The notes under the pieces are model-generated. The model was not told the DNA's origin and did no database searches. It saw only the letters and a list, made by a program, of their open reading frames with translations. Positions 3,756 through 43,100 of a DNA stretch of 64,000 bases are shown here, one piece after another. Positions within the stretch are counted from its first letter, which is position 1. Each line of letters starts with the position of its first letter. This DNA comes from Chlorokybus atmophyticus (Eukaryota; Plantae; Mesostigma and Chlorokybus algae), in contig RHPI01002262.1 in the NCBI GenBank assembly GCA_009103225.1, forward strand, positions 124,001 through 188,000, written 5' to 3'. The translations under genes were made by a program, and so were the position numbers.

Positions 3756-4032
3756 NNNNNNNNNNNNNNNNNNNNNNNNNNNNNNNNNNNNNNNNNNNNN
3801 NNNNNNNNNNNNNNNNNNNNNNNNNNNNNNNNNNNNNNNNNNNNNNNNNNNNNNNNNNNNNNNNNNNNNNNNNNNNNNNNNNNNNNNNNNNNNNNNNNNN
3901 NNNNNNNNNNNNNNNNNNNNNNNNNNNNNNNNNNNNNNNNNNNNNNNNNNNNNNNNNNNNNNNNNNNNNNNNNNNNNNNNNNNNNNNNNNNNNNNNNNNN
4001 NNNNNNNNNNNNNNNNNNNNNNNNNNNNNNNN
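3756..4032. other. Assembly gap (N run)
   Basis: Run of N, followed by C-rich and G-rich tracts. Confidence 0.99.
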
Positions 4033-12021: not shown

Positions 12022-13450
12022 TTGTTGTCCCAGCTCCCATTCCCACCTCATCAGCAGCAGAAACTTTGATGATGTTGCTAATCATCATAGCTGGGGGTAA
12101 AGGTTGGGATTGGGGGCTGTCAGATGCGTTGAAGACAAGTTGAAGCAGGATGCTCGCGTAGACTTAGGATGGCTTGCACACCACACCACAGCTGCTGCAT
12201 GACACCACAAGCCACGCCGCGTGGCTTGTACATGCAGAACTGGTGTTGTGTGCTGAGGGTTAGGTTATGGAGGCAGTTTTTCCTTTCCTCTCTTCCGTTG
12301 GTAGCGCTATTCCAACCTGGCTGTCTGCCTTAGGAGTAGAACTATTCCCTTCGACATTCCCTAATATATGGGCAATTGAATAAGCGTCCAGCATCACTTG
12401 ATGCCAGCAATTTGCGACTGGTGTATGGAGGCGAGGCTGGCGCTGTGTTTAACCAGTCATACACATCTGCAATGTTGGTGTTGTCCGTCGTGCCATTGAT
12501 GCGCGTCACGCATGCCAGCTAACACTACGCCTCACCATATTGCCAGCACATTTGTGTTGTATCGGCAATAGAGCCTGCAATCTAGTTGCCAGTAGTGTGT
12601 TGCACTGTACGACATGTTGGAAGAGGGTGGCAGACCAAGATAGTTATTCGTAAAAAAGCAGCCTTTGCTATATATTGCACTGAGTTGCTACATTTCGCAT
12701 AATGGCGTATAGTGTTTTCGACGATCAGAATTGGATCATACAGCACAAGCACTAAGATCAAAATTTCGAGCGTGAAGCATATGTCTTTTCATTGTACACG
12801 CAATATGCCGTATAGATGCTTGTCATCATGACACTATAGGAAAGGATGTTTTCCATATGTGTGGAGGCAAATATACAACATGTTGTTCACAATAAGCTGC
12901 TTGTCGTAAAATTTTAAAGGTACATTATACCATTTAAAGGTATAATATACCATTCAAATTGCAACAATTGGGTAATGTTGCAAGTATGCATGCACTTGTT
13001 AACCATTGTGATGTCCTTGATTTTGCACACCACAAACACAATCTCGTCTTTACGGGCGCACACAACCACTATCCATTACATTTTACTACATGCATGCGTG
13101 CTAATTATTGATACGCAATACTTAGTTGTGCATGAAATGGCCATAACAGTGTGACCTCTTCGGTATGGATATACCAATTTTGGTTTACCCATACCAGATT
13201 TTAGTATATCCATACACTACTTGGGTAACCAGATTAGTGTATGGCGTTACGAGATACGGCTTTGTTACTGTCTCGTCATTACCAACATCATCATCATAAG
13301 TAACAACGACAACAACAACACTACTCGTGTCGCCACCACCACCACCACTACTAATAATAATATTGTTGTCGTCATCATCACCATCACTACCATGATGTGT
13401 GGTAGTTCGTGAGTGTAGTCTACACTTATAAGCTACTTTTGCGTGCTGTT

Positions 13451-14434
13451 TAGGGATGCGTCTGAACAAGTATGTTTAACAACATAACAAGAACAAAGAA
13501 TATTCTTTATTTGTTCGGGCTATCTTTCCAGTAAAAACGAACAAGCAACTTGTTGAACATATGCAATGAATTTAATATCTTTAAATGCTTTATTGTACAT
13601 TGCTCTCAATACTACTGCCGTGTACGAGTGTCATTTTGTGTGTAATGCAGCCGGTCATGTATACTTGCTTGTTCATGCGTTAAGTATTTTTTCGCTCACG
13701 TAAAAGTATAAGAATCTGCTTAATTCTTCAAGTAAGCACTTAATTTCTATTGGCCGACCCCAGGCGGGCCTAAAACCAGTAATTGCGGCTGACGGTGCTC
13801 ACGGGAGCCTGCAAGGTTGATTACGCACCACTTAAGCGCTGGGTCCCTATCACCCAATTCGGAGGGCGTATAGGCCTTTAGGCGCTCATAGGAGCCGTTT
13901 TCACACGAGAGTCTTAGGTATTCCCGCAAACGAGTTTCTAGTGGCGATAACTTTTCGTGCCCGTGCAGATCTAACCAGACTTGTTTTAATGAAGAGTAAG
14001 AACGAACCGCTGCTTTACAGAGCACTTCGTTATCTAATACCTCGTCCCATGTCTTGCATGCTTTAAGCTGGTAAACTAAATTTACACTCTTCTTACCTGC
14101 TGCACGGGACGATCGAGTGCTACACTCCTCTTTGGTAGTCCCCCAACAGTAGGGATTCTTATCTTGCTTTAAAAGATAAGCGCAAATAGTGTTCCAGGAC
14201 TTGTGGAAGGAAACGTTTAATTGCCGGCCTTCAAACTCTGAAAACGCAAACAGACACATAAATTTTTTCCACTGTTGTTCGTCATGACTGGTTCGTTCGT
14301 GAACCGCAGCAAACTGGAGACGAAACCATCAGCATGAACAAAACTTTAATACTCGAACAAAACAAAAGCATTGTTGTTCTTCGTTATGTTCTTTCGTTCT
14401 TGGATGCGCAAGTTCATGTTCGACCCCAACCCTA
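13451..14434. mobile_element. Non-autonomous hAT-family element (984 bp) with internal cargo
   Basis: Termini TAGGGATG... and ...CAACCCTA, imperfect subterminal inverted repeats of about 60 bp, and an exact 8-bp flanking duplication GTGCTGTT (13443-13450 and 14435-14442). Confidence 0.9.
13673..14339 (-). pseudogene. Decayed rolling-circle replication protein fragment (HUH endonuclease C-terminal part plus SF3 helicase Walker A)
   Basis: ORF 13747-14259 has a motif-III-like SWNTICAYLLKQDKNP and ends in a Walker A-like LVLGPPGVG. A frameshift then continues as IKCLLEELSRFLYFYV. An HADG remnant lies upstream in another frame. Confidence 0.65.
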
Positions 14435-14608
14435 GTGCTGTTCGCCCCGCAAGAGTGACGTCACAGACGTCACAGGCCAATCCATGAATTACGAACTGTG
14501 ACACTCAGTTCATATCTTGCGAGTCGCACTTGATAAAGTGCTAAAAACAGGGGTGTGCTTCCACACAGCGGCGGCGGCGGAAGGGCGGTGGACGTCGTTG
14601 TTGCCATC

Positions 14609-17600
14609 ATGGCGCTGGCGGGGGCTCTGGCCGGTGCGGCGTTGGTGTCGTCACCGCGCACACTAGCCGCATCCAGGCCGGCTGCAGCTGCTCGGTGTCG
14701 CCGCCGCCTCCTACAGAGGCAATGCTGCTCCGCTAGCCTGGCTGTGGAGGCTCCCAGCAAGGAGGTGTGTATGTGTGCATGTGCTTGAGTTCTGGGTTAG
14801 GGTTTCAGATGTAAGCTGGGGAATTGCTCAAGCCATTCAACAGGTGACGTCTGAAAAGGGTCAGGAGAAGCTCAACAGGTACAGCTCCCGCATCACGCAG
14901 CCGCCCAGCCAGGGCGCCTCCCAGGCCATGCTTTATGGCGTCGGTCTCACCGAAGACGACATGCACAAACCTCAGGCAAGTGTTGGTGTCTTTACAGCGT
15001 TCCTAGCAATGTGACAATGCAGCAACTCTTTGGTGTGCTCTTCTTGGAAATGCAGCAAGCATGTCTTGCTTATTCGCTTCATCCATGCGCGCTCCACCAT
15101 TAACGTTTCACTGATCTTAGCATGCCATTGCACAGCTGACGCTTATCTCTGTCAAATAGCAAAATTCAAAGTCTACAAGCCTACAGTTGCATGAGCTTGC
15201 AAGCAAGTGATGTTTTCTTGTGGTGCAATCAGGTTGGCATTTCCAGTGTTTGGTATGAAGGCAATCCCTGCAACATGCACTTGCTGAAGCTCGCCGAGGC
15301 AGTCAAGGAGGGTGTGCGTGCAGCAAACATGGTTGGATTTAGGTCAGTGCAACTGACATCAACGCCGTTGCACGGTGTGTTTATGTGCGTGCTGGTGTGC
15401 GCGTACGCGTGCATGTGCGTTCGCATACATGTCATTGTACAATGTTCAAGTTTGTACATGTCTTTGTGCGCGCGTGTTGTGTGATCTATACAATCTTCTG
15501 TAACTTGCACCCACATGCAGGTTCAACACTGTGGGGGTGTCGGATGCCATCTCCATGGGCACAGAGGGCATGTGTTACAGCCTGCAGTCGCGCGACCTCA
15601 TTGCCGACAGCATTGAGACGGTCATGGGCGGCCAGTGGTATGACGCAAACATCTCCCTTCCCGGTTGTGATAAGAATGTATGTTGTCATATCCCTCGGTC
15701 CATCTCACAACTGCTATCCCCTTGCAGCTCTCGTGCATGGCTGTCTGACACTTTGAATATTCCTGAATTGAATACGCAGATGCCCGGCACGTTGATAGCG
15801 ATGGGACGATTGAACAGGCCTAGCATCATGGTTTATGGCGGCACTATCAAGGTACAGCCAAGCGCGCGCGTGAGTGTCCGCATGTGTTCTTGTTCATGCT
15901 TTGGTGTGCCGTACGCATGTGAGAGTGGGTGTTCGTGTATGCCCAACAAGTCGATGGTTCCGACCTGTTTTGGCATGACTGCAGCCTGGCTATGGAGAAG
16001 CCAAGACACCGCTCGACATTGTCTCGGCGTTTCAGGCAAGCACGCATCTACGAATTTGTGTGCTGTATGCTGCAACAGTGAGTACTCAGATGATTACACA
16101 GTAACCAACATATCTGCGCACAGAGCTATGGTGAGGCGGTGGCGGGAAAGATTACTGAGGAGCAGCGCCAGGACATCGTGCGCAACGCGTGTCCGGGTGC
16201 GGGCGCGTGCGGGGGGATGTACACGGCCAACACAATGGCAGTGGCAATCGAGGCCCTGGGCATGACCCTCCCTTACAGCTCATCCATCCCCGCCGAGGAC
16301 CCGCTCAAGCTCGACGAGTGCCGCTTGGCCGGCAAGTATGTCCTCGAGCTGTTGAAGAAAGACCTCAAGCCCCGCGACATCATGACACGCGCCGCCTTTG
16401 AGAACGCTATGGTTTCTGTCATGGCGTTGGGCGGGTCCACCAACGCTGTCCTGCATTTGATAGCTATGGCGAGGTGAGGAAGGAGGTTTTACTCCAGTTT
16501 AGGCCCTCACTCTGGTGTATAGTGGGTTTATGGTCAAATGTGCACGTGTGTCTTTTCGCCAGGTCTGTGGATGTGACTCTCACGCTCGACGACTTCCAGA
16601 AGTGCAGCGACCGCGTGCCCTTCCTCGGCGATCTCAAGCCTAGCGGCAGATATGTCATGGAAGACGTGCACAAGGTGAGTGTTAATGTTGCATGCGTGGT
16701 CGCTTCGAATGTTGTGTGTGAGACTTGTAGAAAATTAACCTGCTTTGAGCAGGTTGGTGGCACGCCCGCTGTGCTCAAGTACCTGTTGGAGAAAGGCTTT
16801 ATTGACGGGTCGTGTATGACAGGTGGGCAAAGAGACAATGTGGGTTTGCTGTCTCACAAATAACACAATAAACACAGTTGCCCGCAACCTCCAACACCAT
16901 GTGCACATTGCGTGTTGCAGTCACTGGCAAGACTATGGCGGAGAACTTGAAAGATGTCCCGTCGTTGAAAGAGGGTCAGACAGTCATACAGCCTTTGGAA
17001 ACGCCCATCAAGTCCACAGGGCACTTGCAGATGCTGTATGGCAATCTTGCACCCGGGGGCTCCGTTGCCAAAATCACTGGCAAGGAGGGCCTTTTCTTCG
17101 AAGGTTAGCTGTTGCGTTGGTATCAGCGTTGACATAAGTGTTGTCGTGGATGATGCGTGATGAACAAAGGTGGTGGGCGGGTGTGGCACAGGCAAGGCGC
17201 GCGTGTTTGATGGTGAAGAGGCGATGCTCGCTGCCCTTGCCGAAAACCCCGAAAGCTTCAAGCAAAGCGTTGTGGTCATTCGGTACGAGGGTCCCAAGGG
17301 AGGCCCAGGTATGCATTTGTAGGTTACGGTTGTTGATGATGTTGACGCACACATGCACAGTTCCTTTGTTATGCATCTATTTGTGCCTTCACCTCACAAC
17401 TTCTATGCTTCAGGCATGCCTGAGATGTTGACGCCTACGAGCGCCATCATTGGTGCCGGCCTTGGCAAGGTAATACATGTCCATCTTCCCATACACACAA
17501 CATTGCTTGCTTTGCGCCTCAGTCACTTCAACAGTTTGATTGCATGCAGGAGGTTGCTCTGATCACAGATGGGAGGTTCTCTGGCGGTTCACATGGGTTT

Positions 17601-36040: not shown

Positions 36041-36317
36041 TGGGGATGGGTCCGAACAATTATGTTCAAAAACATAGCATAGTACACAGATTGGGGCCAA
36101 TCAGTCAAAGCAGCAAGCACACAACACAGCAAACCTTGATATCACTGGCAAGGGCAAATGGCAGCAACGGCTGATGCGTTCAAGATTTATTGTAAAACGG
36201 CGTCAAAACCATTAACTTGAGCAAAACTTTATCGTATGAACAAAATAAAAACATCATTATTCCTCCTTATGTTCGTTAATTGGCCTTGAATGCATATTCA
36301 TGTTTGACCTCAACCCA
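36041..36317. mobile_element. Short MITE-like relative of the hAT element at 13451-14434
   Basis: Left end tggggatgggtccgaacaattatgttc matches tagggatgcgtctgaacaagtatgttt. Region 36221-36317 aligns with 14337-14434. No clean TSD. Confidence 0.65.
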
Positions 36318-38544
36318 ATGTGGTATGGGATCAGATTTCAACTTCTGGAGCGGTACATGCTCACAAATAAATTTGTGGATATCGGTAGTCAATTGGGAGC
36401 TTTATTGCTCGTATCTTTCAAATGTAGAGCCCATACATGTACAAATTTACTCAATAACAGTGACTATTGTGTAAATAATCTAGTTTGAACGCGAGCATCG
36501 TATTGTAAGATTTGCATTATTGTAAAATTGCGTTTCATTTGGTGACGTCCTGACCCCCTAATTTCACTTCATAACAATCTAATTGTTGCTTATTTATATT
36601 GGCTTAGGCTGTTAACACTAGGATGTAGATAAATGTACACTTAAGTGTACATTTTTCTCATCTGCTGGGCATTGCTATAACAATTGTCAACCTTCTCATT
36701 TTAAGCTAAGATTATTTGCACACATTGTTAACATGTAAGCAATTAATGTGCAAAATGTCAGCTGGATTGGTTACTTGTGTTACAAGTTGCACCTTGGTAA
36801 GCGACCAAAATAGCAAAAGTGCAACACTGTACACTTTTGTGCACAGTTATGCAAGGGCCTTCAAATCATCCTTACGGCTGCATTTGTAGGTATTCCACGG
36901 CATTTATGAGCTTTTGGATAGCTCTTGTCGAGTAGAACTAGTGGTGCCATTGTTTGGTCGGGCCGGCCGGCATTCAAGGTCACCTATATTAGACATCCCG
37001 CGCAAGGGCCATCACACTTGGCACCTGCCACTGCCGGGCTGCACGGCAGTCGCGGGCGCGGCCCGCTTGCTTTTCATTTGCTAGGTTGTGAGTACTAGAG
37101 TTGAACCATTCGATCTGCCTATACGATTCTTGGCCGTCCACAGCACATCCAATCATTCAAAACAACGCCAATATATGTAGAATTTAGCATAGTATGCATA
37201 CATGGCCACTTATGGCTGCATGTTGATTTATGTCATGTGTAGTATGATGATAAACGCCGTATAATTGGTGAAATACAGCGGCATTTTAATTGTTTATTTA
37301 TGACACACATATGGCCGCATGTGAATGTATAGGCGATGGTTCAATGCAATTCAAGTACGTCGGATTGGACATGATATGGTTGCTTGACACACAACCAGGC
37401 AACAGCAACTATTCATATCTACCCGTATCGCAATATGTTTAAACAACCATTTCGTGCATTATTGTCCAAAGTCGGTGGAAGGTACTGTGTACAATGAGCA
37501 AAAAATGGAACGCGATGATGTTTCCATTTTATGCAAATTTTGTGCCATACGTTAAAGTCGATATGTTGAATCCGTACCATATACAAAGTGGCGCCGCCAT
37601 TACACCGCAATGTGTGGATTTAATTGCCATATCAATTGCAACATAGCGCCGTTGAATGTGTAGTTACCGAGTACGAGGTCAAAAGCCCAAAGCATCTTCG
37701 GTTGCCACGAGCAACGACTAGCCGGGAACGGCGGATACTATAACGCGTGCATTCGCGGCGCAGCGCCGTAACAGCGCGTTGAAGCGCGGTCTAAAACGCG
37801 CATATCCATTGGTATCAGGTTGGGTGCCCCCCATACACTCAAAGAATCTTTTAACACATCACAAAAACGAACTGCCATTCTACACGGCCCGATACATTGC
37901 GATCTATTGTGATCTTGGCCAATTTTGTTCTGGGCATCAGGCTATGCTTCGGCCAAACAACTTTCATGAATAAGTTGTTACAAGATTCCTTCTCTATAAA
38001 AAGTTATTCCTATATGAGTGACCTGACGGGTCCAATCAGCAAACCCCAATCACTATGTCAGACATAAGATGCATAACTTTTAAACCACAGCGCCAATTGC
38101 GACGCAATTACTTTGCCTCCATAGATTACGCCGAGGGCTATCCAACAATATGTCACATGTTGCATTGTCACATCACCACCGGCCAAGAAGGTCGTGCCAA
38201 GGAAGGCCATTTGCATGTACACTCGAGCGTACATTTACATCCCTAATTTTAAGTTATAGCCCATGTTGAGTAGAATGCGCCATTTAACTTATGTGCAGAT
38301 TGTGGTATTATCAATAAGTATCATATTGGCTCCGGTGAAAGTCCCTCCACTCTTAGGCCCCACCTTGCGCCTATAAGCCCTCTGTAGCAACCATGTGTGG
38401 GGCCCATACTTTTAAGTGCTAATTCTTGCTTTTAGTAGAGTCCGCCACAAAATACGTACGTAACCAAGGGAGCGCTCTTTCAAATCACATTTCGTTACTT
38501 GCGCATGCAATATGGCTTCATTGAGGAGGGTTAACGAGGGGGAA

Positions 38545-40159: not shown

Positions 40160-43100
40160 CTAGAGCGACGGCACAGTGGGCCGTTGAATATACAACACTT
40201 CATCTATGCAAAGCACTTGATCGTCCTCCAGTGGCCACCGGAAAAATGTGAACACCTCCTTCAACCCGGAGTTGTGGAGCAACTCTAGTGTGTAGTCGTA
40301 GATGCGATACCGGCCGACGCCGTTGCCATCCATAGTGACAGGGACACCTGAAACAGTGACCTGGTCGACTGACTGACTGATGCTCAAGCTGCCAAGATTT
40401 CCTCTCCTCGCAAACGATCCATCAGGCCCAAAAGAGACCATCCGTTCATTGGTCAAATCTTGCGCAGCAAAGGTCCCATTGAGTGCCAGATTGGGAGGGG
40501 CTGGTGTGACTTTTTGGTATTGTCTCCCACCAAAAGTGATGCTGTTGCTTGTGACTTCACAAGGCTTTGGCTGCCCGATTTCAAACCCAGGCATAGAGGG
40601 AAAGTTCATGATAATCTGCCCGCCCGCCATGCGATACACTCCGCATCGTTTCAGCAGATCCGCGCCACCAGCCAGAATGGCGTTGAAATTGCTGAGGAGC
40701 CCTCCGTTAGGAAGACCGTAGAAGACATGGCCATCATGCGTGAAGAAGAAGTGTTCTCGAATGAACTTGGACTCAACCATGTTGGACTGGTTGACCTCGT
40801 GTATGAGTTTCTGGAACACGTAGAGACCAGCCAGCGTTTGATTGGCCATGATCGACGAGCTGGGTGCGGCACCAAATGAACCCGCGACCACCGACGGGGG
40901 TATTGAGACAGACGGTGTTACCCAATCAGGATACGGCAGAGCACTTGACATGGGCTGGGGCTGTTGCTGTTGCAGTGCTGATGTGATGCGTGGAGGTGTC
41001 TCTGGGAAGGCACGAGGAACGGCAGGAACGGTGGTTTGTGTTGCAATGGGCGGATAGGGCAGCGCAGCTGACAGTGGCTGGGGTTTGCTAGTCTCGGGGA
41101 AGGTTAGTGCAGTTGACATTGTCCTTGGTGGTGAATCCTCTTCAAACTCCAAAGCAGCGGAGAGGGCTTGCAGATGTGTAGCTGACCCAGTGAAGGCCAA
41201 TGAAGACGTCAGTGCAGCGGGTTCTGTGTCGGCGAAGGAAAGTGCAGCGGCGAGATCAGAAGCTTCTGGCGAGTCAGGGAACAGGGTGGTGGGGCTGAGC
41301 AACTGTGCCGCTTCCGCACCAACGTAAGCAGCAGCAGCAGAAGGAAGTTGCTGTGCAGCAGGGACAGCAGCAGGTGTCGGCAGTACTGGAACTCGTATAG
41401 GAGCTGGTGGCTCGAACTGGGTCTGCAGCTGGCTTTGCAGTTGCTGACTTTGCAATTGCTGAGCTTGCAGTTGATGTGCCTGAAGCTGCTGCTGCTGGGC
41501 GTGAAGCTGCTGTGGGGCCTGGATGTGCTGCGTTTGCAGTTGAGTTTGCAGCTGCTGCGTTTGCAACTGCTGCTGGGCTTGAAGCTGCTGTTGCGCCTGA
41601 AGCTGCTGCTGGGTTTGAAGCTGCTGAGCTGCAGCGAGCTGCGCTTGCAACTGCTGTGTTTGGTACTGCTGCTGAGCCTGCAACTGTTGAGCCTGCAACT
41701 GCTGCTGGACTTGCATCTGCTGCTGGGCCGCTTGCAGCTGCTGCTGCTGCTGGGCTTGCAGTTGCTGTTGCTGCTGTGCGTGTAGTTGTTGATGCTGCTG
41801 TACTTGCAATGCTTGTTGACTCTGCAATTGCTGATTTTCAAACGGCTGACTCTGAAGCGCCTGACTTTGCAATTGCTGAGCTTGAAGTTGAGGCTGGGCC
41901 TGCAGCTGCTGAGCCTGAAGCTGAGGCTGCTCATAGAGGTGCGATTGCAACTGTGATTGCTGTGGTTGAGGCGGGGGTGCTGATGCTGCTCGTCCATGGA
42001 GCAGGGGGCTGGAGCTCAACTGTGATATTTGATGTACATTGGGTATGGTGGCGCTTGCAGGCCTAGGAGCGGTGTCGGGCTCAGGCACAGTCACCATGCA
42101 TGGTGCAGAGCCAGGCACTGGAGCCACAGAGGGTATAGGTATTGGTGGGGTGGGCGCGGTCACTGTGATAGCAGCTGGTGTTGCTGTTTTCGCCAATTCG
42201 GGGCTCAGGTTAACGAAAGTCATGGTCTTTACTAGGTGGTTCACAACGTCCATGCTGTTTTGGTAAAGCTCTTGATCCGAAGAGATGAACCTGCACATAG
42301 TTTTCTTGTACTAAGATGGCGCTTGGCAAAGGCATGCGACAGCGCCAATGTTGTCAAGGTAAATAGGAGCACTTACGCAATCATTTCTGCTCGCCCAGGA
42401 CATGGATTGGACGCCAAGTAGAACCGAAAGCTGTGCTTCTGCTCCTTGTCTTGAAGCATCTCAGACGCGTAAAGTACAGGATAGCCTTCATCGGCCTGTG
42501 CACATTGAGCAGCACCTGCAACAACAGTGCCACATGAAACATCCTTCTCAAAACTACACGCCCTAGGTGTGATGAACACCAAGACATAGCCTCACTCCCC
42601 CCAAGCATGAAGCTAACCTAGATGATGTTAGTGTACCGACCTCTACTTGCGCATGTTACATGCGACAATGCATGAAAGGCAGGCATTCCTGTCCAGCTGC
42701 ATCATTGTTCCAGCAGGCTTTTGCAAGAGCTTGGCGTCTTTCAGCTTACACTAAGCTTGTACGTTACGTTACTTGTATGTCCCACTCAAGTCCGTTCCAG
42801 TGCCATGAAGTATGGCATTGCTCAGTACATGCTGCTCTGCTTGTAATGAGCGGTAATGCCAATCTTCAGCTGCTGTTTAAACAACTCGACAGCGCTGGAG
42901 CACCGCCCAAGTATGACGAACGCTTAACGCGAGGCTTCAATAAAATATGTCAATTGTTCAACGCGCTGCTTGACTTGTGAGCTGTCAGTGTCAAGTTTGT
43001 AGCGATCTTGCCACTGACCAGTAACTTTACCATAAAGCTGTAGCGGAGTTAGTTAGGACAGCACGCAAGTTGACGACGGAGCCAGGCACAGCTGCTTGAA

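Follow-up and report, generated by a model that had tools for sequence, protein, structure and literature searches.

How does a piece of a gene for a rolling-circle replication protein (Rep) come to lie inside a cut-and-paste transposon in nuclear DNA, directly upstream of a dihydroxy-acid dehydratase gene? The question is raised by a 984-bp element at positions 13451–14434 of the 64-kb stretch of DNA analysed here (the window, meaning that whole stretch). The original prediction, made from the sequence, had read this element as a hAT element holding a Rep fragment, and the analysis supported this overall reading. In our judgement, a hAT-like element probably lost its interior and received filler DNA that includes a dead Rep piece from a family of Rep-only replicons.

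Structure of the hAT-like element

The whole element, which is non-autonomous, begins with TAGGGATG and ends with CAACCCTA; no strand was assigned to it, to its arms or to the flanking duplication. The 8-mer GTGCTGTT directly abuts it on both sides, and the left (13443–13450) and right (14435–14442) copies of this target-site duplication agree at 8 of 8 positions. Both copies, as well as the TAGGG...CCCTA ends, were read directly from the sequence, and the predicted hAT-type termini and exact duplication are present. The terminal inverted repeats are short and imperfect, matching at 7 of 8 positions and at about 14 of the first 20, with TAGGG at each end, and they have the YARNG form of hAT ends. 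The usual hAT target consensus is nTnnnnAn; GTGCTGTT has the T at position 2 and lacks the A at position 7, and thus agrees at one of the two fixed positions. We scanned the window for perfect 5-bp inverted ends of the YARNG form flanked by an exact 8-bp duplication, with the two sides 100–3000 bp apart. The configuration occurred once, at the 984-bp element; 100 first-order Markov simulations gave it 0.08 times on average.

The left arm (13451–13575) consists of the imperfect terminal inverted repeat and subterminal GAACAA/TTGTTC hexamers, and the right arm (14270–14434) of subterminal repeats followed by the terminal inverted repeat, with four hexamer copies in each. The rate over the whole window would give 0.19 copies in the two arms (290 bp), compared with these 8 (Poisson P ~4e-11, for a motif picked post hoc). 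The hexamers are putative transposase-binding-type repeats, as in the hAT superfamily. None of the 105 window ORFs of at least 110 codons contained a hAT transposase domain (BED finger, DDE or hAT dimerisation), so the superfamily assignment is made from the ends and the duplication only. The layout is that of Pack-TYPE elements, with terminal inverted repeats and a duplication, no transposase, and captured coding DNA inside. The GC content was 42.5% in the element and 52% in the 5-kb flanks. The predicted AT-richness therefore applies to the element, but the Rep piece (48% GC) is only slightly AT-richer than the flanks, and it is the arms and filler (34–41% GC) that are AT-rich.

A second member of the element family, found by blastn and by MAFFT alignment of both arms, lies in the same window at 36042–36319 (strand not assigned). 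It is short (~278 bp) and cargo-less. The right arm of the 984-bp element matched it at 73% identity over 113 bp (E=2.5e-12, blastn), and the two members share the first ~60 bp of the left arm and ~115 bp of the right arm. The ends of the short member are mutated, its duplication is not intact and no Rep sequence lies between its arms; it is older than the 984-bp copy. The two members have only their arms in common; that their interiors are unrelated would be expected if each arose independently by gap repair.

Genomic setting

The window is part of the nuclear DNA of a eukaryote in the green lineage. The element is followed on its right by the 5' part of the dihydroxy-acid dehydratase (ILVD) gene (14609–16262, plus strand), which was recognised by ILVD_EDD_N matches on separate ORFs. 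The gene has several exons, which were scanned apart, and its start codon, inferred from the list of ORFs, lies 174 bp beyond the right end of the element. ILVD and the Rep ORF are divergent, with the Rep ORF facing away from ILVD. The element is situated in the presumed promoter or 5' leader of ILVD, and two closely spaced ACGTCA motifs stand beside it (14443–14608). On the left side there are exons of BIRD-IDD-type zinc-finger character (scanned apart), and low-complexity triplet repeats of the AAC/CAC/ATC type (13221–13412) lie immediately left of the insertion site.

Elsewhere in the window, two ORFs matched DDE_Tnp_4, one Plant_tran (PIF/Harbinger transposase), one RVT_1 and two Ferritin_2. 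A 716-codon open frame (40163–42310, minus strand) includes a long, low-complexity stretch rich in glutamine, and its C-terminal part has no Pfam match. A run of N from about position 3764 onward is an assembly gap, and the window therefore comes from a scaffolded draft assembly.

The cargo is an internal piece of a Rep gene

The Rep-derived gene fragment occupies 13657–14247 on the minus strand and corresponds to about residues 75–265 of Reps of ~380 residues. All tblastn matches of family proteins (165 of 165) lay in one frame, with outer bounds of 13657–14328; those of close relatives ran from 14247 downward, and above 14247 there were only 9 weak extensions, from distant-relative matches, that reached 14328. 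The predicted 170-codon minus-strand ORF with its YLLKQD and GPPGVG motifs is present as quoted; it lies within the fragment, starting a few codons before the similarity does. The fragment is truncated at each end, and its distal tail, where similarity is weak, has at most three in-frame stops; no frameshift was detected in the fragment. It retains the motif III tyrosine strand and helix, the helical linker, the strand into the P-loop and the first P-loop residues. HUH motifs I and II are absent, as is nearly all of the helicase, and the fragment therefore cannot code for a working Rep.

The Rep piece is the sole part of the 64-kb window similar to any fetched locus. The left filler of the element, below ~13657, showed no similarity to Rep, and no further Rep-like sequence was found elsewhere in the window. 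A duplication or ends belonging to the Rep piece itself, which would imply its later insertion, were looked for and not found.

The fragment was 83% identical at the nucleotide level to its closest relative, contig L009. The dN/dS ratio between the two, computed on two blocks that were kept separate, was 0.06 (67 codons, dS 1.05) and 0.15 (26 codons, dS 0.60). Because these values are low, nearly all of the divergence must have accrued in working genes under selection. The fragment has thus been dead cargo for a short time, with which the perfect duplication is consistent. A metagenome scan with the window ORF returned 7 loci, all of them distant organelle-like copies and none a second composite of arms and Rep, and an exact-sequence look-up of the ORF returned no record. 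The original prediction spoke of a Rep segment that had been captured and mobilised. Rep DNA does lie inside a hAT-like element; transposition of the composite has not been demonstrated, because one cargo-bearing copy was seen.

The cargo belongs to a divergent family of HUH–SF3 Reps

A word search recovered 15 relatives (E down to 2.4e-44; identity 45–91%), which carry ~77 extra N-terminal residues with motif I-like and H-x-H motifs. A second search, seeded with the 326-residue protein P0018, recovered 17 full-length proteins of 369–405 residues. We aligned 19 sequences, comprising these 17 full-length members, one near-full-length member and the window piece. The alignment of the full-length relatives showed HUH motifs I, II and III together with SF3 Walker A, Walker B and motif C. 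The YLLKQD of the window, earlier called motif III-like, aligned to motif III of the family, in which the K and D columns are invariant and Y occurs in 18 of the 19 sequences, and the GPPGVG described as Walker A-like aligned to the start of the Walker A loop. The interior of the element is, as predicted, a fragment of a rolling-circle Rep, aligning to a family with the HUH–SF3 motifs and fold.

The fold was taken from an AlphaFold model of protein P0020, built on the family alignment (pLDDT 80.2, pTM 0.62). The model matched full-length AAV2 Rep68 (E=4.4e-12), and it also matched a vientovirus Rep, SV40 large T antigen, B19 NS1 and papillomavirus E1. Against a viral structure library, it matched Reps of uncultured CRESS viruses (E=5.7e-19, probability 1.00). 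Whole-chain TM scores were low (~0.35) because the two domains are set at different angles, and the predicted structure has the two-domain fold of HUH–SF3 Reps. Linker helices in CRESS and parvovirus Reps mediate oligomerisation.

Sequence profiles connected the family to curated Reps at a greater distance. An exhaustive search with the family profile gave 1,568 cluster representatives at E<=1e-3, including 82 at E<=1e-30. Among the best 147 of the 1,568, Gemini_AL1 was reached at E<=1e-5 by six (best 1.5e-18), and Parvo_NS1 and REP_ORF2-G2P by one each. Two of these six, found by the family profile at E ~1e-21 to 1e-23, passed the Pfam Gemini_AL1 cut-off of 24 bits, scoring 55.9 and 67.2 bits. 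The close relatives matched Pfam below threshold only (E-values of 0.014 for REP_ORF2-G2P and 0.11 for Gemini_AL1, P0007), and most family members lie below Pfam thresholds. Profile searches of the PDB with the family alignments gave nothing but generic P-loop matches above threshold; papillomavirus E1 and a 'Replication-associated protein' appeared below it (E ~0.1–0.7). The fragment alone gave no meaningful match to Pfam, PHROG or PDB sequences, and the Rep call on it is therefore drawn from its relatives, which link to HUH–SF3 Reps.

From the motifs, the fold matches and the remote Gemini_AL1 links, the family is therefore a divergent clade of HUH–SF3 Reps, and among curated families the geminivirus-type catalytic domain (Gemini_AL1) stands nearest to it. 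The suggested likeness to geminivirus Reps was well founded in this respect, with Gemini_AL1 as the nearest Pfam family, reached through remote sequence links. Assignment to the Geminiviridae was considered and rejected: neither the fragment nor its close relatives passed Gemini_AL1, and the likeness is remote and transitive only.

Relatives occur as one-gene contigs and in organelle-like DNA

Three Logan contigs, each from a different read set, contain one Rep gene apiece and ~200 nt of non-coding DNA: L010 (1387 bp), L022 (1382 bp) and L023 (1420 bp). Their ends overlap exactly, by 26, 30 and 29 nt, respectively. The overlaps suggest that the contigs are circles of ~1361, ~1352 and ~1391 nt; tandem copies of these lengths would fit too. 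In L009 (1–1163; 44% GC), the C-terminal part of a Rep is followed by a 185-nt spacer and then by the N-terminal part, a layout that would correspond to a permuted circle or a tandem array.

The ~1.36-kb contigs carry Rep alone, and no capsid gene, which would mark a virus of the Cressdnaviricota as opposed to a plasmid or satellite, and no second ORF was found on them. No shared nonanucleotide, hairpin or conserved block was found in the non-coding regions of six relatives. One relative, L011, has two palindromes with 11-bp arms (26–49 and 130–153) that contain TGGTATTAC, one base off the nanovirus/circovirus-type nonamer, and a ACTGGTAT motif is repeated between them; the other relatives are without these palindromes. 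No relatives turned up in IMG/VR, whether the scan used a single protein or the alignment.

Other family copies lie in organelle-like DNA. In L025 (449–7367), an intact 376-residue Rep stands beside cob, nad9 and cox1 in mitochondrion-like DNA, and L012 (3330–12893) and L003 (2651–10355) also hold family copies in organelle-like DNA. Decayed copies, split or truncated, adjoin cemA and atpH, or rps10 and tRNA genes, on contigs of 29–33% GC. The contigs with cemA and atpH were fetched over 70–109 kb and measure up to 319 kb on record. The decayed copies are often near tyrosine-recombinase (Phage_integrase) ORFs. Overall, the organelle-like Rep copies had 29–34% GC compared with 48% in the Rep piece of the window. 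Several of the contigs with family members come from metagenomes of Antarctic cryptoendolithic, lichen-dominated rock (PMC7171226).

The further suggestion of a likeness to Rep ORFs of organelle DNA and to algal plasmids was confirmed by these occurrences, in mitochondrion-like and chloroplast-like contigs and in ~1.36-kb one-gene contigs that look circular. No description of the family was found in the literature searched; the donor family may be undescribed.

Proposed origin of the composite element

We propose that a non-autonomous hAT-like transposon lost its own interior, which would have been replaced by filler DNA containing a non-functional internal Rep piece. The donor would be a family of capsid-less, Rep-only replicons of ~1.36 kb, encoding an HUH endonuclease with an SF3 helicase, that also integrates into the mitochondrial and chloroplast DNA of algae. 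The likeliest route would be the one usual for Pack-type elements, a template switch while the double-strand break from excision was being repaired. The template would have been replicon DNA present in the nucleus, whether free or already integrated, and we infer that a free form rather than an integrated copy served as the donor. The composite would then have been inserted 174 bp upstream of the ILVD start codon by hAT transposase supplied in trans, and this insertion would have created the 8-bp duplication. On this account, capture probably preceded insertion at the site upstream of ILVD.

The sequence of events could also have been the reverse, with the element already upstream of ILVD when a replicon piece was end-joined at a break, so that the composite never moved. 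We regard such a nested insertion as unlikely, though it is the strongest of the competing explanations. A single known cargo copy suits late entry of the Rep piece, and an intact duplication is expected under that order too. The Rep piece, however, has neither a duplication nor ends of its own and the filler near it is not Rep-like, and the unrelated interiors of both family members fit filler from excision repair, although neither observation is decisive.

The donor may also have been organelle DNA, in that an integrated mitochondrial or chloroplast Rep copy moved to the nucleus, where the element acquired it. The many relatives in organelle-like contigs, including the intact gene beside cob, nad9 and cox1, are in keeping with this source, but the element contains no organelle gene or tRNA sequence alongside the Rep piece, whose GC content (48%) differs from that of the organelle-like copies (29–34%). 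The closest relative, L009 (44% GC), has a circle or tandem layout. We therefore consider an organelle donor improbable, on balance a weaker candidate than nested insertion.

Retention of the fragment for a function is more doubtful still. A truncated Rep, or a source of small RNA, might be expressed divergently from the ILVD promoter region and interfere with a resident replicon. Its 170-codon frame is still open, it is oriented away from ILVD, and it keeps the tyrosine helix and the linker helices, which by analogy with related Reps may have a role in oligomerisation. An open frame is expected anyway for a recent capture, however, the low dN/dS is accounted for by divergence before capture, and the fragment has in-frame stops in its tail and is present in a single copy; we judge a retained function very improbable. 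Least credible of all is a chance resemblance, with no transposon and coincidental repeats around a stray ORF: the inverted repeat is short and imperfect, and the 0.08 occurrences per window expected for the bare configuration are not negligible, but this reading is untenable because the subterminal hexamers are enriched (P ~4e-11) and both arms recur in the second member (E=2.5e-12), and foreign cargo lies exactly between the arms.

Returning to the capture of replicon DNA by a hAT-like element, the nature of the donor can be stated more specifically, and more tentatively. It is possible that the replicons form an undescribed lineage of capsid-less, Rep-only circles of ~1.36 kb that live in or with green-algal mitochondria and plastids, as a counterpart of the oomycete mitochondrial CRESS virus. 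If this is true, the hAT copy shows replicon DNA reaching the nucleus and then being taken by a cut-and-paste transposon.

Comparison with known systems

Pack-hAT elements are known from maize and rice (PMC8903248). The 984-bp element is like these and other Pack-TYPE elements in being a non-autonomous element with terminal inverted repeats and an 8-nt duplication, in which a captured coding fragment replaces the transposase (PMC8903248). Unlike Pack-TYPE elements, which have host-gene cargo and several copies, it holds a piece of an extrachromosomal or organelle-associated Rep replicon, it is single-copy in the data searched, and its host is apparently an alga or a member of an early-diverging green lineage rather than maize or rice (PMC8903248).

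Tuber melanosporum has a multi-copy transposon with terminal inverted repeats and a geminivirus-like Rep, and Rep-like endogenous sequences occur within transposons (PMC3198968). It is like our locus in that terminal inverted repeats enclose a Rep sequence close to Gemini_AL1 in the nuclear genome of a eukaryote. The Tuber case differs in its 42 Rep genes or remnants, transposase ORFs, 37-bp repeats and lack of a duplication, whereas the element in the window, 984 bp long, contains only an internal fragment of Rep and has ends of the hAT type with an 8-bp duplication around them (PMC3198968).

Rep replicons tied to organelles are known from several lineages. Phytophthora mitochondria contain Rep-like inserts related to red-algal plasmids (PMC3198968), red-algal plasmid DNA also occurs in plastid, mitochondrial and nuclear genomes (PMC3198968, PMC4814812, PMC13499601), and the CRESS virus HthCRESSV1 is associated with, and reportedly replicates in, oomycete mitochondria (PMC13499601). 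These systems share with the window family HUH–SF3 Rep replicons tied to organelles, with copies integrated in organelle DNA. The window family is, unlike them, another Rep lineage, most of whose members fall below every Pfam threshold; its contigs have one gene in ~1.36 kb, and its observed tie to organelles consists of integrated copies. Foreign recombinase, primase and polymerase ORFs have been described in trebouxiophyte plastid genomes, and no Rep is reported in the available part of that account (PMC4524492). A circular plasmid of Ulva mitochondria was considered as a comparator and rejected, since it encodes an RNA polymerase and not a Rep.

Alphasatellites of plant ssDNA viruses are circular, measure ~1.0–1.4 kb and encode Rep only. 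The window family is like them in consisting of small Rep-only molecules that appear to be circular. It differs in having no conserved nonanucleotide hairpin, no Pfam Viral_Rep match, no evident helper virus and no IMG/VR relatives, and in having copies integrated in organelle DNA. The endogenous geminivirus-like sequences of angiosperms are likewise nuclear Rep-derived fragments and often truncated (PMC7758297). In contrast to these, the fragment in the window lies inside a DNA transposon, and its family itself falls short of the Gemini_AL1 cut-off (best E=0.11, for the closest relative P0007).

The Rep family may matter more than the locus, as it has at least 1,568 cluster representatives in public data, is nearly invisible to Pfam and is absent from the viral contig catalogue, and the nuclear fragment would serve as a dated, host-anchored fossil of this family. 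The locus itself combines two known kinds of sequence, a Pack-type transposon and an endogenous Rep sequence. To these it adds a case in which the cargo of a DNA transposon would derive from an extrachromosomal replicon and not from a host gene, placing three mobile systems, the replicon, organelle DNA and a nuclear transposon, in one transfer chain.
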